A stretch of DNA of 64,000 nt, from assembly GCA_051294905.1 (NCBI GenBank), contig CM119378.1:15314001-15378000 (forward strand). Direction: 5' to 3'. This document shows, piece by piece, positions 11,204-53,564 of this stretch. The notes under the pieces are model-generated. The model worked only from the letters and a program-made list of their open reading frames with translations, was not told the DNA's origin and did not search any database. Source of the DNA: Botryllus schlosseri (taxonomy: Eukaryota). The translations under genes and the position numbers were made by a program. Each line of letters opens with the position of its first letter. Position 1 is the stretch's first letter.

Positions 11204-14200
11204 ATGAAAGTCAAGTTAGGCCGAGACCGATTTGTGCTTTGGATGTACCTTAGTATATTCCTTCAGCCTTTGCTATACCGCAAACATGTCGCGGCGGAAA
11301 GTGAGAAAGCTAGTATTGGAAATGATACTATTGACGAGCCAGTAATCACAACTAAAAGATATGGTACGAGTTACAATAATATATTGTGCTATTGTGTGTA
11401 TATTGTGCTTGTCTGTATATTTTAACCAGTTCAACATTATTACTCTGCTCAGATCACAACAATGCCAGCAGGATATACACTAAAGACAGGGTCGACGAAG
11501 TCAATACCGCAGAAAATATCACGGTGCTTCAACGATTGATTCGTGATTTATTCAAAGGATACGATAAAGATACGCCACCCATATTAAACCATCAAGATGA
11601 CATTGACATTCAAATTGATCTCACGTACAGACAGGTGACAGCTACATTCACGCCGAAATTATGCAATCTCAAACTATACATTGCATCTTATCGGCCTCTA
11701 TTCGTACAATATACAACACGTACGTCGTACATTGTGCGATTTGCTTTATCATATGAAGCTTTATCCGTTGGTAATGCATGTTGAGCAGTTGAGAACCCTA
11801 CGAATTCTTTCATAGCCCAATTCCAGAATAGGATTAAATCAGTACATTACCGGTACTTCGGGTTCGGGATTAAATGACTAGCATGCCTTATCTTAGCCGC
11901 TTAACACTTAGGCTCTCTAAATAGCATTTACGTTTTTGTAGACTGAATAATTCAGAATTATTTTCAAATCAGTAAACTACTGTTACTCTTACGAAGACGT
12001 TGTCAGGGGCGCCAATGATGATTTCGGCCGCTCAAATTTCATGACGCTGATATTTGGTAAGAGGTGTTCCTATTTCCGTACATCTGACATCATAGATTTC
12101 CCCATTCAAATTTGATCCTGAATCAACCGATCCATGTAGCATGGAGGTACACCCAGTACCGTAATAACAGCACTTCGTCAGCCCCCCCCCAAAAAAAAAC
12201 GTTAGTCATGGGCCCCCATAGGGTAATAAACCGAACATCTAGGGGGCTTCACCCCACAGACCCGCTATTCGGTTGTTCGTTTTTCTCGCTACTTATCACC
12301 AAGATTTGTTGTCCTCTTTGGTGAGTCGGCTTAAGCGCGCGAAGCGCGAAAATGTTCAATAATTCATGATTGAATTGGTCAATAGGATCGCGAATACCAT
12401 TTATATTGCTATCAACTTTTTATCCTCTCTACTCACGTAATCAGATTTACCGGTATGATAGGGCTGAGTGAGTGAGTGAGTCTTGGAAATACAAGACCCG
12501 TAAATAATAATTAAACAATAAACATCTTCGGGCGGACGGACCCATCATTGGTATAATGACTTCGTTACATGATGCTATGCCGTGACCTCTTGTCTGCTAT
12601 ATCAAAAGATATTGAAATTGTTATTTCTTCACTGGCAATTAATTCGTCCCTGCGGATGGCATTTATCTTGTGGGGCTCAGATTGCCAGGACAGGAAAATT
12701 CGGCGCCAGCCATTTAGACGCCTATGGACATTGGACATTGGACAATTAAACATACATGTAGCCTGTATATTGAAGTTTTCGATCAGCATATGGGCATGGG
12801 CAGTCCTATTCGGCCAAGGTTTAATCGCTGCTAATCGTTCTGGCACACTTCTTTGAGTCGCGTGCTACAAGGTCTAAAACTTTATATGTCTTGGTGCGTC
12901 ATGGCGCGGTAATGACCGACGCCGAAACGCCCATTTCTATAAATCATGCGTATATTTTCTTGGGGGAAGAGTACCCACCCAATAACCAAGATATTTGGAA
13001 ACGTTTTGAAAATTTTGAAAAGTTGCATAGATTACTAAAAAAATACTCTATAATTTATCCTAATTCACGAAATAATTTTTGGCCCCCTTCCAGCCCCCCC
13101 CCCCCGCATTGGGGGGTTTGGGGTGCGGGAGTTACGGTCCTGGGTACACCCTTACTCTTATAGACTCATAAATTCCAATGCGTTCTGCGATGATTGAATT
13201 AGCGCTGAAATCAAGACATTGCATAATTTAGGTGATCGATATGAATGAGAAAAATCAAGTCTTGAAAAGCTTGATCTGGTACCGGCAATACTGGACAGAC
13301 GCGAACTTGAAGTGGAAACCGAAAGAATATGAAGGAATAAAGCACGGTACAGTTTCTGTATCTATATGCTATCTCTCTTATCAAAACCGGATTGTTTATA
13401 CTATTATGATTTTAAAACACCCAAGAAGGCTATCAATCTAACATTTTACTCAATACTCAACAGCGATGCCGATGAAGAATAAACTTTTGCAACAAAATTG
13501 TCGCCCCCAGACCCCCCTCAGGCTCTACGCTTTTTGTCGCTACTTATCAGCGACATTGGGACTTGGGAGTACTGTTTAATCTGTTAGCTGATACCGCATA
13601 AATGCACGACGCGCGAAAATTTCTTAAAATTCATGATTTAATAGGTCAATATGATCAAGAATTGCGTATATACAGCTATTAATTTTTTATCCTCTCTCTA
13701 TTCACTTAATCAGATTTAGCGGTAATACAGCTGAGTAAGGTGTGTTGGAAAAAGTAAGACCCCTAAATAATAATTAAACATCTTCGGGCGGATCCGTTGG
13801 TATAATGACTTCGTTACATGATGCTATTTCGTGACCTCCTATCTGCCATGTCAAAAGATATTGAAATCGCCCAAACTTAATAAACTAAAAGACGCACACG
13901 ATTTCATATTGCTATTTCTTTAGTGGCTACTAATTTTTCCTGTGGTATGGCATTTGTCTTGTTGGGTTCAGATCGCCAGAACAGGAACATTCGACGCCAG
14001 CCATTTAGGCGCACGGACAATTAAACATTATCGAAGTTTTGGGTCAGCATAAGGGCAGTCCTTTTCTATCGGCAATACTGTTAGCGAATTCTCATTGAGT
14101 GTGCAAGTGCATGCCTGTTTTCAACACTTTCGTCCATTTTATTACAGGCCAAATTGGAAATTTCATTGATTGATTTCACCAAGTCACTTCGACTCCTTCA

Positions 14201-14795
14201 TCTGCTAGTTGCATCGCAATCTTGTGATGTTTAGAATCCGTGAAACTGATCATAAACGAATGCTGAATCGATCAAGTAATCACGGTAAACTCTGCCAATG
14301 CATTTTAGTCAGCATACCAGCAACGAAAATATGGCGGCCTGACATAGCTGTATACGAAGAAGTCAGCGCCAGGAATTTAACTCCCAGACTGCCGTTCGTA
14401 CGTGTGTTACACACCGGGGAAATAATGTTCGCTGAACCCACTATCTTGGAAACATCATGCAGCGTGAACACAGCGTTCTTCCCATTCGACACTCAGGTAT
14501 ATAATATATATTAATACGTATTAGAAAATTGACAATACCGTGATATGTTTGTGATGCAACTGACGATGATTTGATATCTTTCTTGGCCTTTACCTCTGCG
14601 TAAATGATAGACAGGCGTTAGCTGAATCATTCTATATCCCAGATATGTTACATTACATTTGTGTCGTGGACGCAAACCGTTAAGAACATCGACGTGAGAG
14701 CCAGGAGAAAATCGGAAGCATTGGACAGCGAGTCGCGTCAACTTTTCATTAATAGCGGAGAATGGGTTCTTGAAAGATGTTGGATCACGAAGCAG

Positions 14796-14841
<46 letters not shown>

Positions 14842-17800
14842 TCAACAGTCCGGTATTTCCAAACGATGTCGTGATAATTAAGTAGCATTCGAGTGCAAAA
14901 ATCAACACCCAAGTTTTGTTTTTAGTCGTCCGTTAGACAATTAAATTTTAAAAACATAATTAATAAGAATACAGTGGATTTGTCCTATGAACATGCTTTG
15001 TTCCTCAATGTGTGTTAAACATTTGAATGTATTCAAGAATGTGAGGGTATAGCTATTTTCACAGATTGCAACCTACTATACGGTCATACAACGCGCCGGC
15101 GAATCTCCGGGGAACGAAGTTTCAGAAGTGAGTTGAACTAAACTGGCTTTTGTCCGACTTCATATATTTAATATTACATGTGTATCAAGTGACATATAGT
15201 TTTATACTTTTCAGAAATCCTATGCAAAGATGCCACCTACCCAAAGAACTACTGCTGCTCATGTTGGCAAGAACCTGACTCATAATATGTACGCCGAGGT
15301 AAATATAAAAATACGCAGTGTGAATTGCAAACAACGTAGGCTAGCCTACGTTGAATTAATTAATTGGATCGGCATTGGCATATAGAGTCATAGACAGTAG
15401 GCACGGACCATGTCCCATAGTGCATTACTTGATTATATCGGCGGATTTTAGTAGATCGGTTATGCATTTGTTGATCTTCCAGTTGGTGTTCGCGGTAATG
15501 CTTCGAAGAAACCCATCCCTGTATCTGCAGAGTATGCTCTTTCCCAGCGTAGCACTCACAACTGTCGCGGTATTCGGATTTTACTTACCTCCCAATTCCG
15601 GCGAGAGAGTTGGTCTTCAAATCATCATCTTGCTGACGTTCATGGTGATGTTTTATCGACAATACTCCAACGAATACCTGTCTAAGAATATATAGTCTGT
15701 TGCAGGTTTTCTTGCTGACTGTCGGAGAAATGTTTCCGGCGTCTACCGGTCCATACATAGGCGTCTACTTCGTAATAAGTATGGTTCAACTTGGAGTCAA
15801 TATCGCAATGACGATCTTTGTACTGCACCTGCATTTCAAGCCATGCGTTAGAAATAAGTCGACGTGGATGTCACAAAGATCGCGTTGGTTCATCATGGGA
15901 GGTGTGTAATAATAGCCTCTNNNNNNNNNNNNNNNNNNNNNNNNNNNNNNNNNNNNNNNNNNNNNNNNNNNNNNNNNNNNNNNNNNNNNNNNNNNNNNNN
16001 NNNNNNNNNNNNNNNNNNNNNNNNNNNNNNNNNNNNNNNNNNNNNNNNNNNNNNNNNNNNNNNNNNNNNNNNNNNNNNNNNNNNNATTTAGGCTATACAC
16101 TGCGATAGGGTTAGTCAGTTAGTCTGGGATAGTATACGGCAAGTCCGTAGTCTACGGATATATCAGCTTACAGTTTATACTTAACTGGCACTTCCGCCGT
16201 AGCTGACACGAACGTCCTGTGTTCTGTGTAGTTGTTGACTGCAGTTCAATAGACGACAACAATTGCCTTTTCCAGATATATTGTACGATGGATAGTAATT
16301 AGGATACTTAAAGCAGCAAGTACAGTACAGCGTACATGAGTCTCTTCAATATGAGTCAATTATACCAGTGGTTCTCAACCGCCGGTCCGCCAGGTATATT
16401 GCAATTTTATACCTTAATTTCAAGATGAAATATGTTGAAGGACAAGCCGTTTATAAAATAAATAAAACATCAAATTTTAAACTGATTCAGAGCTTCGTGA
16501 GGTTGCATATTAGGTCTGGAAACATGTTCGATTTGACTTGAAGTTCGAGCCGCGTCATTTGACGACATGTAAGCGACTAGTATGAGCTGATTCACCAAAT
16601 CGCGCAGTTTGCACAATTATTCATTTTCGATAAATTCATTTTGTGCGGGACAGTAACTGCCGCACCCAAACCCCCCAATTGGAGCGGGACCGTGTTTGAA
16701 GGGGTCCAAAATTAATCCGTGAATGAACATAAATTATATAGTAGCTTTTGAAACTTTCTACTACTTTAAAAAATTCTCGCTTTGCGCCATTTAGTATCAC
16801 AAAATGTCTTCATTATTGGGTGCCCTTCCTCCAAGAAATACGGTACACATGATTTATAGAAATAAGAATTTTAGCGTAATCCATTACCGCTCCACGACGC
16901 ACCAACACATAATGAAGTTTAGAATGACATGGGACTCCTAAACGTGTGCCAAAAATTCGGCAGCGAGAAAACCTTGGCCTAAAACGACTGACCTTTGTTG
17001 ACCGAAAACTTCGCCTAAATGGCTGGCGCCGAATCTCGCCGACTGGCAATCTGTGTCCCACAGGACAAATGCCATACCACAGAAAAAAATTATTTTATAG
17101 TGAAGAAATAGCAATTTGGAATCGCGTGTGTCTTTTAGCTTAGAACTGAATTTCAATATCTATTCACCATATAACGCAGGCCACGAAATAATAACAGGCC
17201 CTCCCGGATATGTTTAATAAATAATTACACACCCTAAATTTTCGAAGCCAACACCTCACTCAGCTGTATCGGAACATTTGATAATTCTGAAAGGATAAAA
17301 AAAATATGGCAGCATATATGCAATTATCAATACTATTGACCGATTCAGTCACGAATTATAGAAAATTTTCACGCTCGGTGCGATTAGGTGACATAGACTC
17401 TCTGCCTATAGGCAGAGTATGAGTAGAATGAATGTGCTCACAAGTACTGGTGAAAACATCCATACAACTGTGAGTGTGGAGTCTTTGGGGAAACCCCCAC
17501 AAATTTGGTTTATCACCCTATGGGTGGTCCAAGATCAATGTTTTTCGGGGACTGACAAAGTGCATTTTGGCCCTGAATTTACAGATGGCCAGGCATAGCT
17601 GTTGCCAGGTGTTTTCATGCGATGCATTGTATTCGTAGTAGCCTACGACTGGTGGCAGTGGGCAATAATCAAGGTACCACGACAAGGTGCTTGTTTCGAC
17701 TCCGTAACAATTCTTCTCTCGCTATTGTCGAAGAGAAGAATCTTATTCGAATTAGTGTGGTCGGTTAAATCCACGACCTTCGGCGCGAAAGACTATAAAC

Positions 17801-19762
17801 GACTTTCGGCAACAGCACGTTTATCTGGGCAAGGTAATTTTACCTCGACTCAGCAGAATCACTACCGTACAATCATATGCATACCACCACGAACATAATT
17901 AAGTACGATCAAAACTTTCAATATGCCACTCTCTAGCACCATATGCTTGCAAAAACTGTTGAATACATTACATTTTGGGTTAATTTCAATTTTTAAAAGT
18001 CCGCCGGTCCGCCAAATATTTTTTGAAATTTTACCGGTCCGCGAGGTGAAAAAGGTTGAGAACCACTGAATTATACGATATGCGCTAGGTGATATACCAG
18101 CGATAAGTCACGTGATATAGCATTACCATAACAGATAGGAGAGAGAAGGGGCCAGAGCTCCACAACACGCAGTAAACTCCGTGAAAACGTTGCTGATATA
18201 TAGCATTTTCCTGGATTTGCTTGACGCTAAGATGGAATGTTAATGGTCCCGTACAAACTGATCTCAAATACAAAACGTTTGCGTTCGCCAGGGGAAACGT
18301 TTGAGGGAGAGAGTCTAATACCTGTGCGATATCGCCGCATTCTGCAGTTTCTTTCAAAAATATGCGGTGTGGCGGATGATGAAGCTGCTTGGATGTTACC
18401 GATTTCAAACCCTGATAGCATTCACGAAGGAACAGCAGATCGCAAAGCTGGTACAAGTAATGGTGAAGCGATGATGAAGACTTCGATCGAAAACAGGTTA
18501 ATTCAGAGTTAAGTGGACGACCGTTGCCAGCTTGTCAATATCGGTTAATGTAGTGTTTCTTAACTGGTTTGTAGTTGAAGCCCACTTTCCACTGGGAAAA
18601 TATTCCACGGCCACCTACTTCTCTTCGAAACATTCAAAATATTTTAAGCAATTCTCTCTTTATGACGTAAGACGGACAAGTCAAGACTTGCCTTAAACCG
18701 GAACAAGAGTTTCGGGGTCACCAATCCTTTAGGTTTATTTAAGTAATATTTATAGTCAACTAGTGCAATTTATAATCATGGATTAATCGTGGATTATTTG
18801 CGGCATTTCGCTGAGTCGACCTCTTATTCCTGCTATATACGCGATTAGGACTATCTGCGAATTCGTTCTGATACTTGAAAACAATTCGATATTTGGTATT
18901 AAGTAGAAGAATAAACCGTGAGAAGTATTCATGTATCCACGTCCTGTGTCTGTAAGCGTGATTTTCACGATGGCGCTCTGTCTATATGCACATTGCACAC
19001 CGCACAGCTGTTACCCGCTAGTCGCCAAAACAACAACCTTATATCAAGACCTTCGCGAATCCCTACCATACGGGTGGCTTCATCACGGTTGTGTTACCAT
19101 AACGAAACACATTCCTGGTCAGATCCATAGAAATTTGCGCTACTACAGCACGGCGAACAAACATAACTAATTACGTCATTTTTCAAATATGGTGCGGTAG
19201 CGGTGGTCCATCCCAAAAAGCTCCCATGGCCCACCAGTGGGCCATTGCCTGCTGATTAAAAACCACTACGTTATTATTCCTATTTCATAGTCTAGCACCA
19301 GCGAAATCGTGATCCCCTATGGATGATATTTGCATGACATGTACTTTCCTTTCGGTGACGTTTCTTTGATATGAACAGTACCATAGTAGATTCACTATAC
19401 TTTGCAGTGATCTGGATTATGTGACCGAGGGTCTTGGCAAGCGGCCCACAGACGCACGGGCTGGCGTAGTAACTGACGAAGGTGCGAATGCAACGACAGT
19501 CGAAAAAACAACAGTACACAAAGCTTTTGGCAAGTTTCGATCACAAGTCGACAAGGTGATGGAAGACATCAGGGCGCAGAAGGAATTCGATCAAGAATAT
19601 CAAGATAGCCTGAAACAAGAACGGCAAGAGTGGAAAAGTGTAGCCAGAATGGTCGATAAATTGTTCTTCAGAGTGTACATCTTCATGCTGCTGGCGAGCT
19701 ATGTCGGTTTGGGCATAGTTGCCATTTGCGGAGATAACAATCTGGCATCGGGTGTTGCATGA
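11204..19762 (+). CDS. Nicotinic-type Cys-loop (pentameric ligand-gated ion channel) subunit, non-alpha, extended loop C
   Basis: Phase-consistent exons 11204-11300, 11453-11634, 13232-13346, 14309-14496, 14643-14795, 15065-15127, 15215-15298, 15483-15644, 15706-15901 and last exon 19408-19762. Candidate loop exon 18232-18450; at least one M3-M4 loop exon is unresolved. Motifs: signal peptide, DMNEKNQVL..IWYRQYWTD..LKW, WRPDIAVY, Cys-loop C-SVNTAFFPFDTQI-C, SWT, FINSGEW, LRRNP-M1, SGERV-M2, M3, EWKSVARMVDKLF-M4. Confidence 0.9.
12154..13142 (+). mobile_element. Full-length non-autonomous hAT element, family B (989 bp), in receptor intron 2
   Basis: Termini cagtaccgtaa / gttacggtcctg; exact 8-bp TSD ggtacacc (12146-12153, 13143-13150). 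Confidence 0.92.
13495..14066 (+). mobile_element. Truncated family B copy in receptor intron 3
   Basis: Colinear match to about 12230-12810; both termini missing. Confidence 0.85.
14799..14840. repeat. (GT)n/(GC) microsatellite directly after the exon 5 donor
   Basis: cag|gtttgtgtgtgtgtg...gcgcgcgtgtgtgtg visible in the sequence. Confidence 0.95.
15921..16085. other. Assembly gap (165 N)
   Basis: Run of n; lies in the intron after the M3 exon and could hide an exon. Confidence 1.
16366..18068. mobile_element. Non-autonomous hAT (Charlie/Buster-type) element C carrying a minus-strand family B copy
   Basis: TIR cagtggttctcaacc / ggttgagaaccactg; exact 8-bp TSD aattatac with central TA. Family B at 16646-17575 on the minus strand. 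Confidence 0.92.
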
Positions 19763-32684: not shown

Positions 32685-35600
32685 TTACGAGAACGATCGC
32701 GGTCCTTCGCCGGCCGCCATGTCGTCTTGGATATGCCCGTCGGCTTCTTCCTTCAAAATCTGATGCTTACGATTTGGCGAAAACGGCCTTCTTGGAGGGC
32801 CTGAGCGGAAATTACCGGAATTAAACAGCCGTATTAGAGTGAAAATCGTGAAGGGAACACTTACCTATATAGCTTAGAAGAATAGGTAAAAATATAAGCC
32901 CGTGCGCCGCGCCCAGCAGCACGATCGCGAGGTACATTCGGAAATAGAAGACGCGGAAAATCTGCGAGGTGCTGAATGCCAGTACCGTGATCCCGACAAA
33001 CTTGGTAAGAGTGATACCGCTGAGCACCTGAAATAAAAAACAAGAAGCCGGTCAATTTCAGTCCAGACACTCCCAGAACTATCACAACAAGCATTGTATT
33101 CAATATTCATATTGCCAAATTTATTCCGCTTCAAGCTTTTCGACCGACTCACATGAGTAGGTCGAAAGTCAGTAATTGCAATTAAACGAATTTGAAATAT
33201 CGATAACGCTAGATATTGTTCCAGAGTCAGTCGAAAAGCTTCCGAGAGTAATAAATTTGGCAATATGAATATATTGTTTGTTGCGATATTGAAGTTCTGT
33301 ACAACAAAAGACCCCCTCACCGAACTGCCCATTTCGGACAGGGCCTCCTTGGAACGGAGCAGCCTCGTGGGCTGACTGCTGAGAGCGAAGGCTCGGGTGA
33401 TGTGAGCGCAGAATTCCACCGATATGCCGACCGCCTTTCAAAAGAATCGGAAATGTTAGACGTGGGGCGAACACAGCCTGACTCAATTGGCACAGGAGGA
33501 CCAGAGATGGTGAAAGTAGTCACTATTGCTACTCAGAGATAGGTAGAAGTAACGCTGTATATATCTTCTCAATGACAAGTATAACTAAAAATTTCCAGCA
33601 TATTCAAAAACCTCTACAACTAGAAGTAGAAAATAGAACGTCTGTAGAGCACTTATGTATTCCAGAAAACACACTAGATGGGGGTATTTCGCCCATTCGA
33701 TATGACACAAACTAATCCCAAATCTACTTTCTACCAGAAACCGAGAAGTGACTATTCTAGATTACTAATTGGTTCGCCGCTGCTTTAGATCGTAGAGCAG
33801 ATCAATAGTAAAGCAATTCACAATGAATAAATAAAGACATTCGACTCCACAATCGATACAATGCCAACGGTACAAAAAATTGGCCACTTACCATGACGAG
33901 GTTCACCAAAGACACCGCGTTCAGAGGTATGCTCCACAAGTACATGACGCCGAACATGTTAAGAATGATCAGCGAAATGGTGAACACCACGTTCAAAGCC
34001 GACAGAACATCCAGGCCCATCATCAGCAAAACAATAATAAATATGACAAGAAGGGAAATGCCTGCGAACACAAATCGAACAGGCGGTCATAAATCTCCCC
34101 ATATTAAATCTCCCCAATTTTTGCTACTTACCGAGATTGAAAATGGTGTCGTGAACGATAGTAAGGTATTGCTCGTAGTAGACATAAAATATCGAATAAG
34201 GGAACACTTCCACCGAGCTGTTCAAAGCGGCCGTCATATTTGCGGCGAGCGCGTTGGCTTGTTTCAAGCACGAGATGAAGTCGGAAGATGTCTTCGCCAC
34301 AGTGTGATACGTCATGAAGTAGGTCGCTAAAGAAGATAGTCATTTGTTTTATTACCCCTCTAGACACTGCTGTCTATAAACATCGGTACCTCCTACATCC
34401 GTCTTCAGATCAGTGCCCGTGGTCGTCTTGTTGATGATTTTCACACCACTGCCATATGCTGCGTGGCCACTGAATGCAGAAACAAACGGTTTCAATGCCA
34501 AATTGATATCAACGCAGCAATATTCAGCGACATGACTAGCTGTATCGGAGAGTGAATGCATTGTCTTCCTATGGAATAACCACGGTCACGGTAAAGGTGC
34601 TCGTATAAATCCGAATTTATAGCAAAGCGACAGGGTCATTCAACTACAACCAGCAAAATTCATTTAGCAAGATAACCATACCCTTTGGCACACTGCGTCT
34701 CTGGGTTGTCGTTCAAAAACCACGGCAAGAACTCCATAAATTCTTCGGCGGTCGGCCGCGGATGTTTGCCGACTTGGTCCATGGATCGGCAATTCGTACA
34801 ATTCGCAGTAGACGGGATGACCTACGAAATGTACAGTCGATTAACAATCAAAACATATGTTTCTATTCGTCTAGCAGGCACGGGGTGGCCGGTAACAAAG
34901 TACTTCACTTTTTTAGCCTACTCAATGTAGGTATCGCAAACGCTCACTACTTCGACAAGTTTTCAAGCAATTACTTTCTAATTCACCATAAATTAAATAG
35001 TTTCCGGCTTCATTAATCATTCCGCAATAGCCGTCTACAGAGGTGGTCAAATTAGTTAGCATTGGTTCCAAAAAGTAGATTTTGTCGAGGGCTAGCAGAG
35101 ATCTCAAGTTGCATCTTCACGACTAACACAAAATGACAATGACAGTATAAAATAGGTGAATATCCAGCGAATATCCAGATACCGCCATTCCGGGCTATTC
35201 TGGCAAATCGTTATAACAATTTCACTTATAAAACCGCGCAAGCCTATCCTAAACCAAAACTACACTCTACCTGTAAAAAATTAGAATTTTTCCTACAAAA
35301 ATGGTTGAGTATTCAAAAACATACCCGCTTGATTAGTGCAAGTCAGCAAAACCTACCACAGTACTTGAAAAAGTAGACCCACTGACTACGTCTGGTTGTA
35401 TATACTTTGTCGTGTCATAAGTTAACGTCTTGACTGTACAACACGTGACAATTTCTGAACATTTTTATAGCCAGGGAAATCGCTGCTAACACGAGTGAGC
35501 AAACCGAATAATGTCCTACCGTCGCATTGCAGAACATGTCATTGTCATCGTTGTAATATCTGCAGCACGACGACTGCGGCTTGAGCCAGCTGAAATAGTC

Positions 35601-38600
35601 GTCTATCCAAGACGAGGCCTGGTACGCGATGGTGGAGCTGCAGGAAGCATAAAGGTTTCAAATTGATTCGCACCAGGGGTAACTACCTAGCCACTCACTA
35701 ATTCGGCATTTGCGCCGCTGCCGATATTTTCTGCGTCAGTGAATTATCATTGCAGCCGTTTCCACCACAGATTTTATTAGATCCGTTCACTGTTTTATAA
35801 TCGTATCCTTCGGGCACTACGAAATATACCGGAGCGCCGACCGCGAGGTAGCTAAAACGAAGGCAAACGGTTTAAAAGTTTACATTTGAGAAGTAAACAG
35901 CAGACCACCTACTTGCTGATGCCGTCAAAGTAATCTAAGACGTACGAGTCGCTGGGCATGGACAGGCTCTGATCCAAGCCAATCTCGATTTTGTGAAGCA
36001 CAGCGCCGCTGAAACACGCGATTCCTGAGAAAAAAGGAGATTAAATATTAGAAATAATAAAAATATACTTGAAGAGCTAGTTGGAGGTACAGAACTTCAA
36101 TATACATATATACAATACATACATATATTGAATAATATATTCATATTTGTGTGCCTTGCAGTCGAATTTTACCGAAATACACCAACCTAGCCTGTGCCAA
36201 CAGAAGGAATCCTGTACCATCTAAAAATAGCACATTGAGCACAAGCGATCTCTCCGCCCTGATTATTCGAAATTTCGTATCAGTTACGTCATATTTGATT
36301 ATACAATTGTTGATTTACAATTTTCTTTCCAATTCTCTACTAGTTGCTGACGATCACCCCTGACGAGTGTCAGCAAAAATATTTGAGCTTATTTCAATAC
36401 GAATATACTGTTCAAAATTATACTTTTTCGAGATATCTAACTCTTGATGTTTACTTATGTATGTGTGTAGTCTTGATGAGATGCACCCGAAAAATTCCCA
36501 GGTTTCAAGACATGTATTCTTGCAGCGGGTGTTGTAATGAAACAAGATCAATTGGGACACAAGTCGAAGTATTTACAATGTCGAAGTGAGCACGCGTGAA
36601 ATCCAATTAACAGAGTGAGCAATGTCCACTCTTTGGTGTGCGTGTGTGTACTACTGCATCAACAACACCCGGATTAAACATCAACGTTTATGCACATACT
36701 GATTTAATCTGCACCCGGCATGTTAGTTTTCGACCAAACTATGTAAGCAAAATAAACTAAAAATAGCACCCCGGCGAACACTAGTGGAGATTGATTGTAA
36801 CCGACCGGTGACTAGGCACGAGTTCCTAAAATAACACAATGTGCACAATGCAGCATATTAGCACTATTCTGTGGAGATATCCGTCTCCATGCTGCTATTT
36901 ACTGTTACCGTTCGCCTTCACTCAAGTTTCGTTATTTAACATAAAAAAACTTAGTCAAGCATATGTAAGGGCTTCATGGGAATTTAAAGTTGATTTAAAA
37001 AAAAAAAATGGATTAATTGAAAAATCCAGTTGCAAACAATTGGAGTCGTGTATACACTGCTGTAGTAACTTTTGACTTTGCATCAAATTGATTACGGTTA
37101 CAGCAATCATCGACAACCGCGATCACATCCTCACCCATGAAAAAGACAAAGAAGATAGGCCGGACGTAGTCCCACAAGACAAAAGGGGCGACCACGCAAC
37201 GCATGATTTTGTGTAGCAGCCCTTCTGAATTTTCCGGTGACGACGAGGTATCTTTCACGCAACAGCAGCAGTCGTACCGGTTGCTATTCTGTAAGTAAAG
37301 ACAGTAGCTGACGAGAATGAACACAAAACTTTCAGCCACAAAGCCCAAGACCAATTACAAGAGTAGAGAAGTCGAACACGTAAAGAATGATAACGTTCGA
37401 TTAAAAAGAAATTTCCAGGCTACCGTGCCCCACACGTCCTTACCTCTCTCTTTGCATCGAGCGCGAGAACGGCCACAAAGCAGGTCATTTGCAAGAGAAA
37501 GTCGGTAAGCACGGCCAGGCCCGCGAACAGAGAAAACGTGCGGACGGCAGGCATCGTAGACATACCACCTGTTACAAAACGAACAATTATTATGAATGTG
37601 TTTCAGTCCCCGAGCTTCAGAGTCGAAGTTTCGTTAAATTTTCTCCCGCCAGAGTCACCGAGTCACAGAAACTTTGCTCCACACTACGTAGTCGGAAAAT
37701 ACACACTGGCTGGAGTCAGAGTTTCCTAAAATGCCCCGAATCCGACACCAACCACTTAGAAACCAAATGATCTAATGGGTTACAGTTACACTTACAGAAA
37801 TTTAATCAAGTTTCACACCTAGGCAGACCTTCACAAACGTAAATTCTTCCTATGAGTGCAGTTATATTTAAAAATGTTGATTTTCTTGGTAATAAAAACA
37901 ATCAAATAGGTAACAAATGCATAATTTCCTGAAATGATTCACAAGAATGTTGGAGTCAAGAGTCAGTCGGTACTCGAGACAAAGTTATGTCCTCAAAAAT
38001 ATCAAAAGTTCAAAAGTCACGAATCATACCCAAGAAAAATGCCATCGATTCAGACAGCGACGACATCAGCATGCTGGGCGCCACGTCGCCCAATATCCGT
38101 CCGATTTGCTGCTCCACGCTTTCTCTCGGGTCCCTCTCGTCCCTGAAAAATAGTAGAACAGTCTCAGTAAGGGGCGATTCCCGTGCGTTTCCCCCGCAAA
38201 AAAACAGTACCTTTGGTAGTGTTGCACAAGAATGAAAATATTATCGACACCAACGGCGAGCACGAGAAACGGCACGACTTCCACGATAATCAACGTCAAC
38301 GGCACCCCGGCGTAGCTGAAGATACCCAGAGACACGCCCACCGAGCAAAGCACGATGAGAACACCGCACAGGCCCACCGACAATTTCAACTCGATCTGTC
38401 GACGAAAAATATCAAATTTACACCCCGTGTCCCGATTTTTTTCTCGCGTGTGCGCATACCATGAGGCGTCCGAATTGCAGCGTTGAGAATTTGCCGAGGA
38501 ATATCGCTACGTATCCGAACATGATGATGTACGACACGGCGATGGTGATCATGTCGGCGCCCGACTCGCGGTTGATTTCGTCCTCGATGGACCGTTCCGC

Positions 38601-41600
38601 CGAGAAGGAGATGTTCAGGTTGTCGCTCGAGTAATTTTTCATAAATTTCAGGTACCTGAAAAACGGGACGACGGCTTGGTAAGTTCTGTTCACTATCGAG
38701 TATGGATAAATTGAGTGACTCAATTACGAATAGAGTATATACTTCAAAACGAGTCGACTAGTCCAGTATAACTCATCATGATGTTATACGAGTATGGATG
38801 ACGAGGAAGGTTCAAATATGTACATGTACGTACAAGTACATACAGTTTATGCGACCACAAAAAGAATGCCAATTCTACACCTCATTACAGATAATTTGGT
38901 ATTTTTATGAACTTTAATAATATATGCACTTCATACGCAATATTGCAATTTGCAAAATACACCGCTCTAGTGCAATAACAATTGATTAATGACATCATGT
39001 ATAAAAAAAGCCTTCTTCAGTGAATTCTTTATAGTATACCGAGAGATCAATGCGTTCTAGTTCCCGTCAACACCATTCGGGTACGATTGGCATTGAAAAA
39101 TGTAGAAGTGAAATCTGGAAGTAGTGACCTCCAACCAGCAGTGCTGCATGAGAGTGCAATTTCTCAATTATACCTTGCGAATGCAATGTAGGATAATGCC
39201 ATCCCTGTCCCATGGGGATGACACCAATAAAACTACCAATCCAGATCAATCAATCAATCAATCCAGAACTCTAAAAACCACAAATACAATCTTACTCTTT
39301 CTCCCACGCCAAGGCTCTGCCCAGCTTCAAAGGGTCGTTGTAAATGTTATTGACAGAAAAGGTGATAACCGCCGCGGTGGCGTTGAGATAATTTTTGCCG
39401 CCGAATCCGCCGAGGCCCACCCACGGAAAGACGGGACCGCCGTAGGTGCCGAGACAGCTCATGTGAAGTTTGGTTGTGTCATCGACGGACGTCGGACCAC
39501 TGAAGGAAAAAAAACATGCGATGAAGACTTGCACAAAGAACGGTTGATCGATTGGAACGGATTCATTTCGTTCAAAACAGCGTTCAAAGGTCACTTGGCA
39601 CATGGAGGACGAGTCTGGATTTCGTGTCAAAGTCCAAAAATGTTTGGTAAAAGGATATCGATACGAAATCGGCACAAATCAAAAAGCCATGCTTCCAAAC
39701 ATAATACCACCAACAGCTGTATCGACATATTGAAGATATTTGATTATTTGTTCTTGCCCATCAAATCAATAAGAAGTATCACGTGTCTTTACTCTTTACG
39801 AGTGCGAGCAAGAATTCAAGTTTTCCTCCCGCACAACAGCTTGCCCTACTTCTAATTCTCAACACCATTCGTTTATAGTCAGCGATTATACCAAGTTGCA
39901 GTTTGACCGCTTGGCGTGCCCATTCATAAAAGAACAATTCAGATTTTCTTTCTGCTTCTCAGATATCGCGTAATACGTCACACATTGAAACATGACTCAA
40001 CGATTCATTGAGCGTTGCGAAAACAAAGTTTCGAAGTCCGGTGTTACTGAGAGCGATCCCATGACTGTAAACGTTTAAATTATGCAAAGCGCAGCAGAAT
40101 AAGATTCCAATACGCTGTCGGATAGAGAGGTATAGAACACACCTCACGTGACATAACGGTAACACAGATTCCAAATCAGCATATTCTATTCTAGTACAAG
40201 GACTTTATGTTTATCACAAATCAGGAATCCTCGGGCAATTAAACGTATCTGTTACTGTACAGTAGGACTGTTCAAAAATGACTTTTTTTCTCAAATCGTA
40301 CTGGCTACTTGATAAAATTGTTAGGTTACCTAATTTAAGCCTACACACAAAATTTGGTTCAATTCCAGCCAGTAACCGCTTTGCTACAGGAGAAGAAAGT
40401 TTCTATTCATTATATAAAAATAAATAAAAAAAATTAAAAAATTTCTGTTCACCCCATGAAAGTGTTGGGTTGTCTAAAGAAACGATGCTCACCAAATTTG
40501 GTTCAATTCCAACCAGTGGAAATGGAGTTATTGCCGTCGAAAAATTTGGATTTGAATAAAATAATATTTACAGTGGGCACCACCATACTAAATAATTAAA
40601 GAATTGGCCACCGTAAATACTATTTTATTCATAATCCAAAGACTTTATCGCCTTTATACCTTATTCAAATTTGTGATCAATTTTCAACTCACGGTGCATA
40701 TCAATTTGGCAGTGCAGTGAACTTCGATGCCACTTATGTCGAAATTATTGACAATTGGTAATAAAATATACAACAGACACCGATTCAGCAATATCAAGCT
40801 CACTTGGTGCACGAAATCAGATGGTCGTGGAAATCGGCTTGAAGCCCGAAGAAGTCCGAGAAAGTTTTATGGAGGTTGGTTCGGTTGTTCTGGAACCAGT
40901 TCAACGGCGACATGATGGCACAGTTCTGATTGTAAGGCGCCAGCGGCTTCAAACAGATGTCTTCCAAGGTGATATTGCGATTTTCGTCAGGATAAAACGC
41001 GGTGATGTTTTCAACCGCCAGCTGGAGACTCAGAATCTGGCAAGAGGTAGAATCGATTTCAATTCACAATTTAAACTGTGCGCAGTTTGGCACGCTACCA
41101 AACAGTATAACCTGTGCCGCTACGATCAATACAACGCGTGTCTTAACGTCATTAGCAGTAGTGTACTGATGCCGAACAAATAGTTACTAGTGCAGGAGTA
41201 GTTGGATTCTACTTTAACAGCAAAAAGCGCAGCACACCTCATCAAGAACATCCCGAAATCCCAATATCGGTCCAAAATGGACGTATTTAATATCCTTCGG
41301 GTCCGTGCTGTCCGTGTACAGCTTGTAGTCCATGCCTGTCCAATTTTTTGCCACTATGATCAATTGCTCGGTCCTGAAAAAGACCGCAAGAAAACTATTG
41401 ATACAGACACGAATTACTTAACAGCGGCAACACACAAACCTGTAAAAAGGCTCAAAATGACTGTCGAAGTACTCTTTCTGTATCCTAGCTTCGCTCTCTG
41501 GCGACGACCACAATTCTACAGGGTCGGTGGTCACTTGCATCTTCACAAGACCAGAGGTGCATACGGCGACAAAAACGACACCTGAATACAGCAGAGTGTA

Positions 41601-44600
41601 AAACTGCGACTGTAAGATTTCAACCAACAACAAAACCCACCGATCAGGATTATCAAATACGGGCGACTGGCACAAAAAGTACCCCACCGACTGAACACAC
41701 TATGCAGGACCCTGTCCATCTTCATGCCTAGCTTGACGCAACTGGATGGAACATCATTGCTAACGACTTTCGGAGAGTAGTAGGGATCTGCGTTCTCTAA
41801 CAGCGTGTTACCGTACGTCGATTTCTGATGCTTTGATTTGTAAATGTACGTAGACACATTGCTATACACTGTACAACGATTGAAGGTCGTAAGGCAAACT
41901 ATTTTCGCGTCCCGCTACAGGCTACACTCACGGTATACGAAAGACAAAGACACAAACACAAATGTCATGACGACGTAATACCCGTCCAGTCCAAAGATAA
42001 GCCACGGTTTTGCTGGCGGTGGTGGAGAAGGAGGTGGCCCAGAGCAGCTGGCGGGACAGTCGTTACAGCTGCACCCACCTTAAACAAGAAGAATTTGATC
42101 ATCTGGCTGTGGTACATGTATGCGACATGCAGACAGCTATCGCAATATCAAACATACAGCCGTATAGGCAGGCTTGCCATAACATCCTTATCAAATATTT
42201 GTCCTTATTTGAAGGGTGATGTCTTATAAAACTACGTTATCCTCATTTCTAAGAGTTGTCCTATTTTCACTCGTGTCCTTAGTTTGTCTTATTTTTGGCA
42301 ATAACGCCACGACTAAAACTGGGCGAAAATGATGAACTTATCTTTGGCCATCAGTTTACAATTTACAAATTTCACGGTTACTCAAGTCAGAGTTTTTGGC
42401 TGTCCTTAGTTTTTGATCCATATATTGCTTTAGCATTGTTGCGATCGACCATTTGGCTAGTCCTGGGACAGGCCAACAGAATTGATTGGCTTGACACACG
42501 GTACACACTTGACTATGTAAATTTCTCCACAATCCACCACTATCTGAATCTAAGCCAATATGCATTCAAGGTTATAGTACTGAATACACAAGAAACAAGT
42601 AGGCCTACAGTTGTTGCTAAGCGGAATAGGACAAAGAAATATTTAGACTTCGAAATATAAATTGACCATAAATGTATTGGTAACCGTAAGATATCTATAA
42701 CGTGAAATATATTCGTGCTGAATAGTTTCAACTCACCATCGCCACCGGGAACGCTCTGGTTGCACGGTATCGCTGGGGCGTTCATCGATCCCCCCTCATC
42801 TCCGGGCTTCAGGTAATTCACATCGATTTGAAACGGGGCAAATCCGTTGCTCGCTGAGTTCATGTAAGATATCCATTTCTGCAAATTTTGCAATGTGAAA
42901 CAGATCATAGAACACGAAAGGAATCAAGCAGGAACGTACCTCGGCCGTGCATTTATCTGCGTACGGCCCGCAAAGTAAATCTACCGCCGGCGCATTGGTC
43001 GAGGGATTGGTAACGTGTTTGCATGAATCGAACATGCTTTCTGCGTAAACGGTGGAGATATTATAGTACATCCCGGTGACAAAAGTCTTGTCCGAGAAGC
43101 TGTGGTAATTCCCGGCAGCTATAAAAAAGTACGATTAGGAGTCCTGAAAAGGGCGGAAACCTGGTTAAACCCTACATCCGTTCTGGTACCCTGTCGGGTT
43201 GGTGTAGACACTTTGGTTCGGACTGCATGTCATGTAGCAGAAGAGCGATACAAAGTTATAAAAGCACGTCGGACATCTGGAGAAAGCCTGGTACGGCACT
43301 TGAATGTTCGATTTGATGGTGTTGAGTTGGGACGAATCGCAACATGTCCGTGTTTCGTTGCCTGCGAACACACACCAAAGAGAATCATCACGGTATGGAA
43401 ATATATATATAAAACTACTGCTCAAAGAATTAGATGTGCATAAAATTGTCTAGAATTCACTCAGTAGCACAAATGTGACGCTTGTCGAGGCAGGCACAGG
43501 CACAAAACCAATTTCAACGATAGAGTAACGAAAACGAAAGGTAAATTAAACCTAGGGTTGTGATGGTTTGTACCTGAAGTCATAGGCAACTTTCAAGATA
43601 GGAATAACACTACATAGGACAGTCAACACTGCATGGATCTAAGTGAAACCATGAAGTGATTTTTAAGTTACGGATATCCCTTTTGGCCGCGACCATTTCA
43701 TAAATAAACAAATAGATTGACAATTCTACAATTAATTAATATGACAGGACACTGTGTAGGCAACCCAGGCAATTTGGCTTTCCAAACAGAATTACCTCCT
43801 TAAGGTATATACAAACATAAGAAATTACGTAACACACAGGAAATGTAATGTCATTTCCTATGTGATTTGTAAACTGATTAACACAACCCTAATGTTGGAT
43901 ATTATTAGTCATATATGTCAAATTATGTCATTATTACCATTATAGAGCATTGGGCAAACTTCCAGCAGCAGATCAAGATCTTTTGAAGGCAATAAGGGAG
44001 CTTTATCGTTGCTGTAGCAGTTTAGATTCTTATTAGTCTGTGTGTTTGTGGCACATTCTCCATACATAATGCATCGTCCTTTTTCATGTTTCACTGTAGG
44101 ATTACTCGCGACCACCAGTACCTGAAGTAAAACGCGATTGAATAGGCAACATTGTGTCAAGAGATACAAGTGTGGGTGAAACCATATTAAATAGTGGACA
44201 TTAATAGGCCACAAAGCACATAGGCCAAAGATCAATGAGACCAAAGTTCAAACTATAGGCACAATATTGACATGCACAAACAAGCCAAGTGTGACATATC
44301 TGATACCCGAATCATATAACACCAATATCGGCAATATGCGAACCCGAATGATATAACACCAGTTTTGGCAATATGCAATCAGATCATTTCAAGTCTACAT
44401 GCGTTCAAGGGTCAACCTACAATGATGAATAACAACTTATATACGCAGGTATAACTGTTCAAATTGACAATCATGTTCCTGTGGCACAGTCACCACTGTC
44501 ACCAGTACATAATTAGATAACACAGGTACGATCTCTACTACAGGATTGTGAATGTGAAACAGCCATTACACCAGGGTCATATATGGATAACTGGGGGGCC

Positions 44601-49809: not shown

Positions 49810-49856
49810 TTTTTAGGGTGGGTTGCGTTTGCAGTGAGAGAGCAGTATAGCAGTTT

Positions 49857-50687
49857 CTATTTGAGTTTATCAAGGTCATCCTTTGACTCAATGTGGATTC
49901 TGGGTGCGCCATCATTCTTTTTCATGTAGATATTTCCATTTGCAGTCCAGAGGTATTTGAAGCTTTTTTTTTGTTTCGCAGCTCGCGCTTCAAAGAAAAC
50001 ATCTCTTCTGTAATTTGTTAAATTTTCGTTTAGGAAGAGTTGCTTCATTCCATCTACACCAAAGTCCTTGATATCCCTTTTGGCCTTTTTCACTTTGAGG
50101 AATTCTTTTTTTGGTTGCTCTGAAGAGAATTTGGCTATAACGGGTCCTGTTTTGTCCTTATTTTTGAAGCGCACTCTATAACACTGCACAATCTGTGGCG
50201 CAGTAATCTCAGCTTTCAAGGCGTTAGCTATTTTCATGATCGTTTCAGGCAGATTTTCTTTTTCGGAGTGGGGAACACCATGAAATTCCAGGTTGTTGTT
50301 TCGAGATTGCTGCTCCAGGTTGTCGTTGGTGCGTTCTAGGTCACATATTTTTTTGTTCAGGAATCTCATAGTTGACTCAATTTTTTCGTGTTCCTTGAGC
50401 ATGGATTCTTGTGAGGCGAGTTCTAGATTTTTTTTGGTCTCCTCAAATTCTGCATTCATGAATTCCATGCCAGTCTTGCAAGATTCTATCTCTTTTCGCA
50501 GCTCTTCTACGGCAGAACCAGATTTTTTGATATCTTCAGCTGTAGTCTGCAGTTCTGAGATGATGTTGCGCAGTTCCTTGTTTTCTTCCTTTAACACTTT
50601 GACTTCAGCGAGTGTATCTTCCAGTTTTCTGTCCATCTTTTTCAGTCTCAGCAAGATGACATCTTCGTTTGTTCCGGGCTTTGTCAT
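49857..50687 (-). CDS. LINE ORF1 (276 aa): coiled coil followed by an RRM/CTD-like region
   Basis: Heptad-rich N-terminus, LEQQSRNNNLEFHGVP, C-terminal LFLNENLT...FFEAR...KYLWTANGNIYMKK. Lies directly upstream of ORF2 on the same strand. Confidence 0.9.
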   Translation of the reverse strand: MTKPGTNEDVILLRLKKMDRKLEDTLAEVKVLKEENKELRNIISELQTTAEDIKKSGSAVEELRKEIESCKTGMEFMNAEFEETKKNLELASQESMLKEHEKIESTMRFLNKKICDLERTNDNLEQQSRNNNLEFHGVPHSEKENLPETIMKIANALKAEITAPQIVQCYRVRFKNKDKTGPVIAKFSSEQPKKEFLKVKKAKRDIKDFGVDGMKQLFLNENLTNYRRDVFFEARAAKQKKSFKYLWTANGNIYMKKNDGAPRIHIESKDDLDKLK

Positions 50688-52009
50688 TTTGTTTCTTGGA
50701 TGGGTATATAGCCTAGAATATAGCCTAGATTACTTTAAATCTTAATACAACCAACAACACACGAGCATGGATACACGTGAGCATAGGGAGGGTTTTGAGT
50801 GGGCCGCGAGGTAATTTCCTATTATATTATCGAAATCCTGTTATAATTTTCGAAAATGAATTGCTCAGATTGTGAACTTGCAAGGCCAACCTAAAATTAC
50901 AAGTCTGGCTGCGACACTTGGGATGTTGATGACTAATATATCAGTTCCGACGCATTGGCAGATCCACGGTCCAGTCATATTTTTAGTAAATCGTCGTACA
51001 TTACAATAAACTAATATAGTAGTGAAATTTTTCTTCACGCTTCGCGTATTTAATTGTCACACGATTTCTTGCTTGGTAGCCTACCCCCTCCTGAATATGA
51101 AAAAAACGCCTAATTTACCCGATTGAGTCTAACTGTATTCGCAATTACGGAGAAAGTCTTTTCGCGTTTGCGCTCGCAGAAAGATCGTCGACGATGAAAT
51201 ATAGGCACAAAATAATTGTCGCATATTACCGGAAACCTTCGATATCGATGTATCCAGACGCCGAATAGTCGTGTCCTTGCTAAATGAGCCCAGAGGGAGG
51301 TATACAGTAGACCCGCAATAAACTAAGTAATGATATTATTGACCTATAGGTCATTTATAGACTTTGAAAATTTTACTCGCTTGGCGCGGCTAGTGGACCG
51401 CGCACTCGTTCGTCAATTGCATGTGCGCCTTTAGCCGAAAAGGTTGGCCATCCCTGGTCTAGATTAATAATCTACCCATAGCTTAGTTATCCATCGTAAT
51501 CTAGAGTCTGTCAGCCGTCAGTAACATCGGATGCAGCAACAAAGACATACGTGCCGCCGTGCCGGCTTGTGACGTCATAATGACTACTTGTCAATCGTAG
51601 ATAACATCATAGTTGCACCAGAACGCACTTTACTCCATGCCATTGCTGCGAACAGCATTAAAATTCAGGCCTGCTGTTAAATTATGTGAAATCAGCAGAT
51701 GTGGTTGGTGCATATAGCATCTTATGAAATACGTCGGAGCCGGAGCTACTCCTCAATAACGGGCTCCAGCTCCGGCTCCGGCTGAATTTTATGTAGAGCT
51801 CCGGCTCCGGCTCCAGCTCCGGTGAAAATACACGGCTCCGGGGCTGCGGCTCCTTGCTCCGGCTCCATGTCCAAAGCCCTGGGTGCAAGCACGCTTCGAG
51901 GATGTTGATCTTGACATAGTGTTCTAAGGAAATATGATCTAATGATCTTGGTAATCGAGTCAAGCTAAACTCGAAACTTCTTTCAGGTCTGGCGGACTGG
52001 CGCTGGCCT

Positions 52010-52785: not shown

Positions 52786-53564
52786 ACAGTGTGTTTTTGT
52801 GTAGGCTATATGCCTTAAATTGGAATTCATCCTTTCTTCCAACATAGGCTTTGCAAATGTTGATTGGAAAATGCAATCCTGCCCGATTGTAATCACCAAA
52901 CAATTGCCGCGACGCAAGCTATACTCGAACGGAACCCTTTTGTGTTTGTCGTGAACGACGAGTTACTGCGTGAATACGGACTTATTGTGTGTATTCTTAC
53001 CTGCTTGATACACTCGTATTCTCGAAATGTAGCGCAATTTCTCTCGTGGAAGTCTAGTTTCACTTAGCTCATACGTCGAACCACGTTCTCATCTCATTCT
53101 CATTTGCTTGGTAATATCTCATGGTGGGTCGCAACATGAAACATGCATATCAAAAGCGGGTTGCAAACTGAAAAGGGTTGGGAAGGACTGCTCTAAAGGA
53201 AACCAAGATTTGTCGGGTCAGTCAATGTCTTGGAGCGCGAAAATAAAATGCGCCTATTTTTATGTTGAATAATATAATAATCTTGACCCGTCTTCGAGCT
53301 TTGCCCCTCCCCATTGAGAGGTTTGCGGTACGGCAGTTACCTGGCTACCTGGACCGGTTCTTATGACAATTGAAACGACCTCCTAATCGCTAAATATTAT
53401 ACATATGTTACTCATATATCTCTTTTCTAAAAATGAGAAAGAAATGTAAGAATTATGCCCATTCTGACAGAAGTGTAAGTATGACCTATCGTTTAATAAT
53501 AAAATAGGATTCAATCCTATAATATATTTACTATAATAATCAAATTATGTCTCATTGATGTCTT

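Follow-up and report, generated by a model that had tools for sequence, protein, structure and literature searches.

A Cys-loop receptor subunit gene lies intact on the plus strand of the 64,000-nucleotide (nt) stretch of Botryllus schlosseri DNA analysed here (GenBank assembly GCA_051294905.1, contig CM119378.1, positions 15,314,001 to 15,378,000 of the forward strand; the whole stretch is called the window, and positions are counted from its first letter). In the product of this gene (at about 11.46-19.76 kb; the protein is called W1), the tip of loop C is replaced by an insert carried on two small exons. In pentameric ligand-gated channels, the coupling of binding to gating starts with loop C closing over the agonist, and the tip of the loop is a main contact of antagonists and peptide toxins; in all characterised cation-selective members known to us, this tip measures about six residues. 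The long loop C is not peculiar to the window gene, and is instead the hallmark of a branch of receptors found only in sea squirts. Overall, we put at roughly 70% the probability that W1 is a transcribed ascidian cation-type channel subunit with an insert at the loop tip, a retained pocket and gating by a small amine.

Structure and transcripts of the window gene

The gene model comprises ten exons, in a frame that stays open from 11482 to a stop codon at 19760-19762, and all its introns run from GT to AG. Four RNA runs were compared with positions 11300-15915: X1 and X2, from one study, and X4, from another, as contigs of complementary DNA (cDNA), and X12 as deep raw reads. The exons are listed below, M1 to M4 being the transmembrane helices.

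11461..11634, plus strand: exon 1, the first confirmed coding exon, with the N-terminal helix and beta1, ending ..DLTYRQ (model frame from 11461/11482; cDNA contigs X4 record 6, at 11461-11638, and X2 record 4; joint 11634|13232)
13232..13346, plus strand: exon 2, loop D (..IWYRQYWTD..), PF02931 match (joints 11634|13232 and 13346|14309 in cDNA contigs from three runs)
14309..14496, plus strand: exon 3, loops A (WRPDIAVYEE) and E, then the Cys that opens the Cys-loop (..CSVNTAFFPFDTQ)
14643..14795, plus strand: exon 4, which completes the Cys-loop with its second Cys, carries the loop B Trp and loop F, and closes with the initial 10 residues of beta9 (..SGEWVLERCWITKQ)
15065..15127, plus strand: small exon A, 63 nt, 21 codons, phase 0-0, the end of beta9 with its aromatic residue (IATY), then a variable spacer
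15215..15298, plus strand: small exon B, 84 nt, 28 codons, phase 0-0, the loop-C module and the start of beta10, ending ..NMYAE
15483..15644, plus strand: exon 7, starting LVFAVMLRRNPSLY, the rest of beta10, the pre-M1 RR, M1, the M1-M2 loop (PPNSGERV) and the start of M2
15706..15901, plus strand: exon 8, the remainder of M2 and M3, Neur_chan_memb match (cDNA piece 15705-15902)
18292..18496, plus strand: exon 9, intracellular loop, beginning ..ETFEGESLIPVRYRR (predicted from AG/GT sites, a fitting frame and homology with the paralog and Styela)
19408..19762, plus strand: exon 10, the end of the intracellular loop, M4 and the stop (predicted from the frame; C-terminal Neur_chan_memb match, E 1e-3)

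The exon translations given in an earlier note on this DNA match the sequence exactly, and the domains follow the order of the Cys-loop superfamily, Neur_chan_LBD (PF02931) and then Neur_chan_memb (PF02932). The first of these matches exon 14309-14496 (E 2.3e-13), whose joints are present in X1, X2 and X4, and also exon 14643-14795; the second matches exon 15483-15644 (E 1e-6), whose joints are seen in cDNA contigs, exon 15706-15901 and the M4 exon. The Cys-loop signature is present as C-SVNTAFFPFDTQI-C, its two Cys standing 13 residues apart and FPFD lying between them; the joint 14496|14643, seen in cDNA, falls within it. A run of N at 15921-16085 lies inside the intron following the M3 exon.

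The joints 13346|14309 and 14496|14643 are found in X1, X2 and X4 contigs alike, and 15127|15215, 15298|15483 and 15644|15706 (GT..AG) in those of X1 and X2. Both small exons, which the earlier note had described as phase-0 exons with canonical sites and whose four boundaries indeed all read AG|..|GT in phase 0, are contained in X1 record 3 and X2 record 5. The latter contig (1282 nt) covers 14350-14788, continues with 4 letters and then with 15062-15127, and runs on to 15902 and beyond; because 14793-95 and 15062-64 both read CAG, the 4 letters being 14789-92, the join falls exactly at 14795|15065. This joint is missing from the automatic joint list because the (TG)n repeat starting at 14796 was skipped. 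The three junctions predicted around the small exons (14795/15065, 15127/15215 and 15298/15483) are thereby all present in spliced cDNA contigs, and the contigs that span the region carry both exons; neither a different YxCC exon nor a transcript devoid of the two, the outcomes against which the earlier note had staked its reading, is among them.

Since the X1, X2 and X4 contigs are spliced, they derive from messenger RNA (mRNA). Moreover, a genome-wide six-frame search places the peptides of exons 14643-14795 and 15215-15298 at two loci only, the window gene and its intron-containing paralog, so that the spliced form is not a retrocopy. The contigs differ from the reference at 13 sites, eight of them synonymous, including all five in the two transmembrane exons. 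With contig depths of 3.5-7, the window gene is transcribed, correctly spliced and lowly expressed.

The earlier note had also suggested that the 63-nt exon could be skipped to tune the length of the loop. No exon-skipped form is found among the contigs, which drop rare forms; the idea of tuning fares better in Styela clava, where predicted isoforms differ by 13 residues in the homologous exon. At the donor GT of the exon preceding the small exons begins a microsatellite, (TG)n/(GC)n, some 48 nt long (14796-14843), and the paralog has no repeat at the matching position. UG repeats beside splice sites can bind splicing regulators, and this one could affect the use of the small exons downstream. 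In X4, record 7 matches 13262-13345, 14308-14493 and 14640-14776 and ends in 14 letters that match nowhere in the window at up to 2 mismatches; this loose end at 14776 could be an allele, a graph artefact or a junction of another kind.

At the 5' end, ATG 11361 opens a frame with a good signal-peptide-like stretch (MVRVTIIYCAIVCILCLSV..) within 11361-11480, shifted by one base relative to the frame of the first confirmed exon. Mini-introns joining this ATG to exon 1 were tried and rejected, being 24-38 nt long and giving a wrong frame. The offset could stem from an indel in the assembly, from allelic variation or from an exon farther upstream that escaped detection; in a tunicate, trans-splicing of a spliced leader is possible as well.

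A long loop C shared across a tunicate clade

From SGEW to the Tyr of YAE, W1 has 56 residues (10+21+25), compared with 20 in nicotinic acetylcholine receptor (nAChR)-like sequences; the excess of 36 bears out the figure in the earlier note. A wider span, from the Trp of GEW to the basic residue before M1, was counted on a single alignment that also holds vertebrate type 3 serotonin (5-HT3) receptor subunits:

W1, the window gene: 66 residues
W2, its tandem paralog: 62 residues
ten tunicate relatives: 61-77 residues
Styela P0271: 37 residues, the sole exception among 13 clade members
21 vertebrate 5-HT3 subunits: 27-31 residues
nAChR-like sequences: median 30 residues, with outliers at 44, where an acidic insert lacks CC, and at 45, where the sequence looks internally duplicated

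A span of 61-77 residues is common to W1, W2 and 10 of the 11 relatives, from Styela, Clavelina, Ciona and Phallusia. Two landmarks keep their places within it. The aromatic residue 14 positions past the GEW Trp (the Y of IATY in W1), at the position of nAChR Y190, is kept in 12 of the 13 members, and 10 positions ahead of the pre-M1 residue stands a Tyr or Trp (the Tyr of YAE in W1) that corresponds to nAChR Y198 and to Y235 of 5-HT3A. With both landmarks fixed, the insert thus replaces the hairpin tip only: 42 residues separate the two aromatics in W1, six do so in nAChRs (x-C-C-x-x-x) and five in 5-HT3A, and 12 of the 13 clade members have 37-53 residues in place of a tip of 5-6. In a phmmer alignment with 5-HT3A, the Styela ortholog likewise breaks at the loop-C tip, with 51 query residues against 2. 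The remodelled ligand pocket that the earlier note had proposed is not borne out, as both loop-C aromatics and the Glu of YAE are kept and just the 5-6-residue tip is exchanged.

Between GEW and the pre-M1 residue, the W1 reading frame contains no vicinal Cys pair, as the earlier note had stated, and in this W1 departs from nAChR alpha subunits (alpha7, alpha9 and invertebrate alpha7-like), from which it differs as well in the 42 residues that stand for the x-C-C-x-x-x tip and in falling outside the nAChR-like clade; it does match them at five aromatic-box positions and in a cation-type M2. To our knowledge, loop C of 5-HT3A never carries vicinal Cys; with 5-HT3A as the nearest characterised relative, the missing Cys-Cys is therefore ordinary. 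Alpha7, the comparator used before, gives way to 5-HT3A, by sequence and fold, as that nearest relative. A hidden YxCC was considered in frame +2 of the 84-nt exon, which reads ..NYCCSCWQEPDS* (..NYCCSC.., ending in a stop), and was set aside as chance because nothing resembling it appears, in any frame, in the corresponding exons of the paralog and Styela.

The two small exons recur in the paralog W2, which lies 47 kb upstream on the same strand (C8:15278420-15289179) at about 60% identity. All its intron positions and phases are identical to those of W1, and its small exons measure 48 and 87 nt; the intron between them is 4.2 kb long in W2 and 87 nt in W1. In the Styela clava ortholog, LOC120331651 (XP_039254706 / XP_039254707; an uncharacterised prediction scoring 559-569 bits with W1), small exons of 90 and 90 nt, both in phase 0, stand at the intron positions of W1, and the IxxY start and the exon-B module are shared. 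The first of these contains an internal in-frame donor (GAG|GTGG) whose use gives 51 nt instead of 90, which exactly explains the 13-residue gap between the isoforms that NCBI predicts as X1 and X2, with 77 or 64 loop residues. The 63-nt exon of the window gene has a candidate in-frame donor, GAA|GT, at 15118. The Styela gene also differs in being single-copy, as against a tandem pair in B. schlosseri, and in having the clade's N-terminal GKTATxxG motif, which was found neither upstream of the window gene nor upstream of the paralog.

Farther afield, in a B. schlosseri gene of subclade B (one of the two long-loop subclades), the insert also sits on two small exons, the 3' intron lying two residues off that of W1. 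This gene (C6:34001-44000, minus strand) has a first loop-C exon of about 56 residues that is very rich in His, Asp and Glu (..EHDEEDDDEEHETKTHHDEPGDHHG..), and relatives in Ciona and Phallusia carry similar tracts; from its composition, such a tract could possibly form a metal- or proton-binding lid. A short-loop gene on C14 has the first intron without separate tip exons. In the HTR3A gene of the sawfish, a shark relative, loop F, beta9, loop C and the start of beta10 all lie in one exon, whereas the W1 tip has two exons of its own.

A homology search with exon 14309-14496 against 1.8 billion representatives returned proteins of Styela clava, Clavelina lepadiformis, Ciona intestinalis and Phallusia mammillata as top matches, Styela being the nearest annotated relative; the window's own protein was not among the matches of the database searches. 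The automatic names of the relatives are inconsistent: alpha-9-like, beta-3-like, acr-16-like, 5-HT3A-like and uncharacterised. A careful maximum-likelihood tree of 51 sequences, which is unrooted and whose nAChR-like set consists of uncurated database hits to one exon of the window gene, contains a tunicate clade of 13 rows (100/100; 98 in a quick tree of 68 rows), a vertebrate 5-HT3 clade of 18 rows (100/100) and an nAChR-like clade of 20 rows (100/99), and W1 falls outside both the vertebrate 5-HT3 clade and the clade that the 20 nAChR-like sequences of the sample form. W2 is the sister of W1 (100/99), and the pair is sister to Styela XP_039254706 (100/99), which places the tandem duplication after the split from the Styela lineage. 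The short-loop Styela P0271 lineage branches first in the clade (93/67), a pattern that fits the long insert having arisen once, in the common ancestor of both long-loop subclades.

Outside the tunicates, the best match of W1 is vertebrate 5-HT3A, which is also the best solved relative of the Styela ortholog (PDB 6W1J, 4PIR, 6HIN). Pairwise, W1 scores 205-230 bits with 5-HT3A, and no nAChR-like sequence takes it above 205, values of 175-195 being typical. A PDB search with the Styela ortholog gives 2.5e-63 for 5-HT3A and 7e-49 for alpha4, and in Foldseek the top 28 matches are all 5-HT3A, with template modelling (TM) scores of 0.76-0.84 and 35-38% identity, as against 28-31% for solved nAChRs. 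By pairwise sequence and fold, then, this tunicate-only clade is nearest to 5-HT3A. Searching the rest of the B. schlosseri genome with vertebrate 5-HT3A yielded no better candidate. The likeliest reading of its place in the superfamily, and one we consider fairly probable, is that the clade is a fast-evolving tunicate counterpart of the HTR3 family.

Pocket, pore and the two parts of the insert

W1 shares with 5-HT3A the loop D sequence IWYRQYWxD with its Trp and Arg, the loop A Glu, the loop B Trp and the Tyr-x-Glu of loop C, together with the absence of vicinal Cys, the PPxSGERV sequence between M1 and M2, the -1' Glu and the 9' Leu; it differs from vertebrate 5-HT3 in the hairpin span (66 against 27-31 in 21 sequences). 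Of the residues listed for serotonin binding (W91, R93, E130, W184, F227, Y235, E237, Y144 and Y154, in human 5-HT3A numbering; PMC9977066), W1 keeps W91, R93, E130, W184, Y235 and E237 and has Ala for F227, Arg for Y144 and Ala for Y154. The Tyr that it has for N129 in loop A is nAChR-like, and all five positions of the nAChR aromatic box are occupied, by the loop A Tyr, the loop B Trp, the loop D Trp and both loop-C aromatics, the first three of which the earlier note had rightly reported as retained. Every member of subclade A retains the aromatic box and the two principal-face Glu residues. In the M2 region (..PPNSGERVGLQIIILLTFMVFLLTVGEM..), W1 has Glu at -1', Leu at 9' and Glu at 20', with no Pro-Ala-Arg ahead of M2, as in a cation-type channel.

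Constraint on the insert is uneven. The non-synonymous (dN) and synonymous (dS) divergences between W1 and W2 given below are rough figures, as dS is saturated:

exon A: dN 0.71, dS 1.17, identity 29% (only IATY conserved)
exon B: dN 0.34, dS 1.46, identity 50%
ectodomain core: dN 0.28, dS not defined, identity 60%
M1-M3: dN 0.10, dS 2.35, identity 84%

Long-loop members of both subclades share the exon-B module, which reads hydrophobic-x-M/I-x-P, V/I-x-x-V/I, L/T-T and then the beta10 aromatic. AlphaFold models of two relatives, with a predicted local distance difference test (pLDDT) score of 87-89, have a beta-sandwich ectodomain over a four-helix bundle, at a TM score of about 0.8 to 5-HT3A. 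In the model of Styela isoform X2 (residues 84-420, pLDDT 88.9), the spacer scores 57-71 and the module 79-86, the latter forming a four-residue strand and a short helix; in that of the subclade-B protein P0005 (pLDDT 86.8), a spacer scoring from below 50 up to some 62 is followed by a module at 87-94 that again forms a strand and a helix. The insert consists of a variable, poorly modelled spacer, encoded by exon A, and a conserved module of about 25 residues, encoded by exon B, that leads into beta10.

The retained aromatic box, the 5-HT3-type Glu residues of loops A and C, and the -1' Glu, 9' Leu and 20' Glu of the pore suggest that the subunit most likely still forms a channel and that the agonist is a small cationic amine resembling serotonin or choline. 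The insert would sit atop the lid and not line the pocket. On the models, the exon-B module is probably packed against the lid's outer face or the neighbouring subunit, which would alter the closure of the lid or access to the site, while the spacer probably projects into solvent as a flexible, evolvable linker. The Styela isoforms suggest, by analogy, that the length of this spacer may be set by splicing in some species.

Weighing the readings, the neighbourhood and what the clade would mean

A number of points weigh against a pocket-retaining, 5-HT3-related small-amine channel. In loop E, the Tyr residues of 5-HT3A are replaced by Arg and Ala, and serotonin is therefore just one candidate ligand. 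The statements on structure come from models of two relatives. The anion-channel signature was found in 0 of 287 fetched proteins, hence the tree has no outgroup, and for want of an anionic one it is silent on whether 5-HT3 receptors, nAChRs or both form the sister group; the comparison with ligand-gated ion channel families that the earlier note had advised yields a distinct tunicate clade and a trait of the whole clade. Group hidden Markov models prefer the nAChR-like set for this clade, by 5-63 bits, opposite to the pairwise ranking; since that set was chosen as hits to the gene's own exon, neither this ranking nor that by pairwise score and fold is decisive. Finally, some evidence bears on the state of the window copy itself, and is taken up with the second alternative below.

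Among the alternatives, the one that survives best, though we think it doubtful, holds that loop C has been rebuilt as a surface for a larger binder (a protein or peptide partner, a metal ion or a toxin shield), with the classical pocket secondary. Such a role would account for an exon-B module that is conserved in both subclades, modelled as ordered and exposed at the lid, for the His/Asp/Glu-rich spacers of Ciona P0152, Phallusia P0155 and the C6 gene, which suit metal or proton binding, and for complementary-face loop E residues unlike those of either 5-HT3A or nAChR. However, the five aromatic-box positions and both Glu residues kept throughout subclade A are hard to explain if the pocket is unused, the W1 spacer is neither His- nor acid-rich and evolves almost freely (dN 0.71), and no partner is known.

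A somewhat less probable alternative is that the window copy is a decaying or silent duplicate and the upstream paralog the functional gene. The terminal branch of W1 is 2.6 times longer than that of W2 (0.55 against 0.21), and at four positions where the other 12 members of the clade do not vary, W1 alone carries a substitution, while W2 has no such private change: Ser to Pro before M1, Leu to Ala in M1, Asp to Asn in the M1-M2 loop and Thr to Ile at 6' in the pore. The third of these (PPDSGER in relatives) lies at 15589-15591 and the fourth at 15619-15621, both within exon 15483-15644. No in-frame ATG stands in the frame open from 11380 into exon 1, the signal-peptide-like ATG at 11361 being the one out of frame, contig depth is as low as stated, and the one deep raw-read run, X12, has zero reads on the exons. 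On the other side, the ten exons are open and each intron is GT-AG, mRNA is made and correctly spliced in samples from two studies, all the differences from the reference in the transmembrane exons are synonymous, and dN in M1-M3 is 0.10 against a saturated dS.

The third alternative, that the small exons are an artefact or a minor cassette and the main mRNA has a normal short loop C, perhaps from a mis-assembled YxCC exon, is largely refuted and very improbable: rare isoforms would be invisible in contigs, the X4 contig from an independent study stops at 14776 with its 14 unmatched letters, and another frame of the 84-nt exon reads ..NYCCSC.., but the only contigs spanning the region contain both small exons, the conserved beta10 Tyr-x-Glu would be lost without exon B, the paralog and Styela have the same exons in the same frame, subclade B has their equivalents, the CC reading occurs in W1 alone and runs into a stop, and the unmatched letters of X4 occur nowhere in the window. 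The explanation we prefer thus remains that of a small-amine-gated, cation-type subunit whose pocket is kept under a lengthened lid.

Regarding the neighbourhood, the Styela ortholog (OZ123517.1:7389215-7404306) lies antisense inside a dynein heavy-chain gene, and in B. schlosseri the minus strand has a dynein AAA1 region at C8:15247226-15250394, which precedes the paralog by about 28 kb; no dynein-like frame was seen among the long open frames on the minus strand of the window, seven of which were checked against Pfam. The dynein neighbourhood is conserved, as a neighbourhood and no more. Other genes of the window are the following:

32800-44250, minus strand: NPC1-like gene, with the NPC1 N-terminal domain at 43921-44247 and the sterol-sensing domain at 38069-38506
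46897-50729, minus strand: apparently intact retrotransposon of the kind without long terminal repeats, its second open reading frame (ORF2) of 972 codons having endonuclease and reverse-transcriptase domains
53560-60330, minus strand: cytochrome P450 gene, with the exon of the haem-binding region at 53568-53894 (PF00067, E 5e-30)

ORF1 of the retrotransposon precedes ORF2 and is a 290-codon coiled-coil whose end matches Baculo_FP_2nd. Within the introns of the receptor gene, four stretches (12070-12223, 12378-12531, 12994-13147 and 13764-13917) have a summed contig depth of 60-390 and many joints to unrelated sequence, and are dispersed repeat copies abundant in RNA. Similar ORF-like fragments (..RNIRRQPFRR..) occur near 12.6, 13.9, 16.9 and 30.7 kb, on both strands.

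Tunicates are the group most closely related to vertebrates. A Metazoa-wide survey of 5-HT3 receptors has no tunicate sequence in its first search hits (PMC9977066), and a study of nAChR evolution set aside, without describing them, amphioxus or Ciona sequences that grouped with HTR3 (PMC6354393). In the open-access papers and preprints searched, we found no description of a long loop C in tunicate receptors. Members of the clade are already in public databases, and the advance lies in recognising them as a clade with a hallmark of its own rather than in any new gene.

A bolder picture, which we regard as unlikely on present evidence, is that ascidians have no conventional 5-HT3 receptor and that this clade is its counterpart, with a lid that bears a modular, structured cap and a spacer whose length is set per gene and, in Styela at least, by the choice of splice site. 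If this were true, lid length would be a regulated parameter of gating or ligand access, and the His- and acid-rich spacers would make the channels of some paralogs metal- or pH-sensitive; we know of no pentameric channel for which regulation of lid length has been described. As a branch in which the pocket residues are kept under 37-53 partly ordered tip residues, and this across three ascidian orders, the clade offers a natural experiment on how far the lid can be loaded and a concrete candidate for the 'missing' tunicate ionotropic receptor of the serotonin type.

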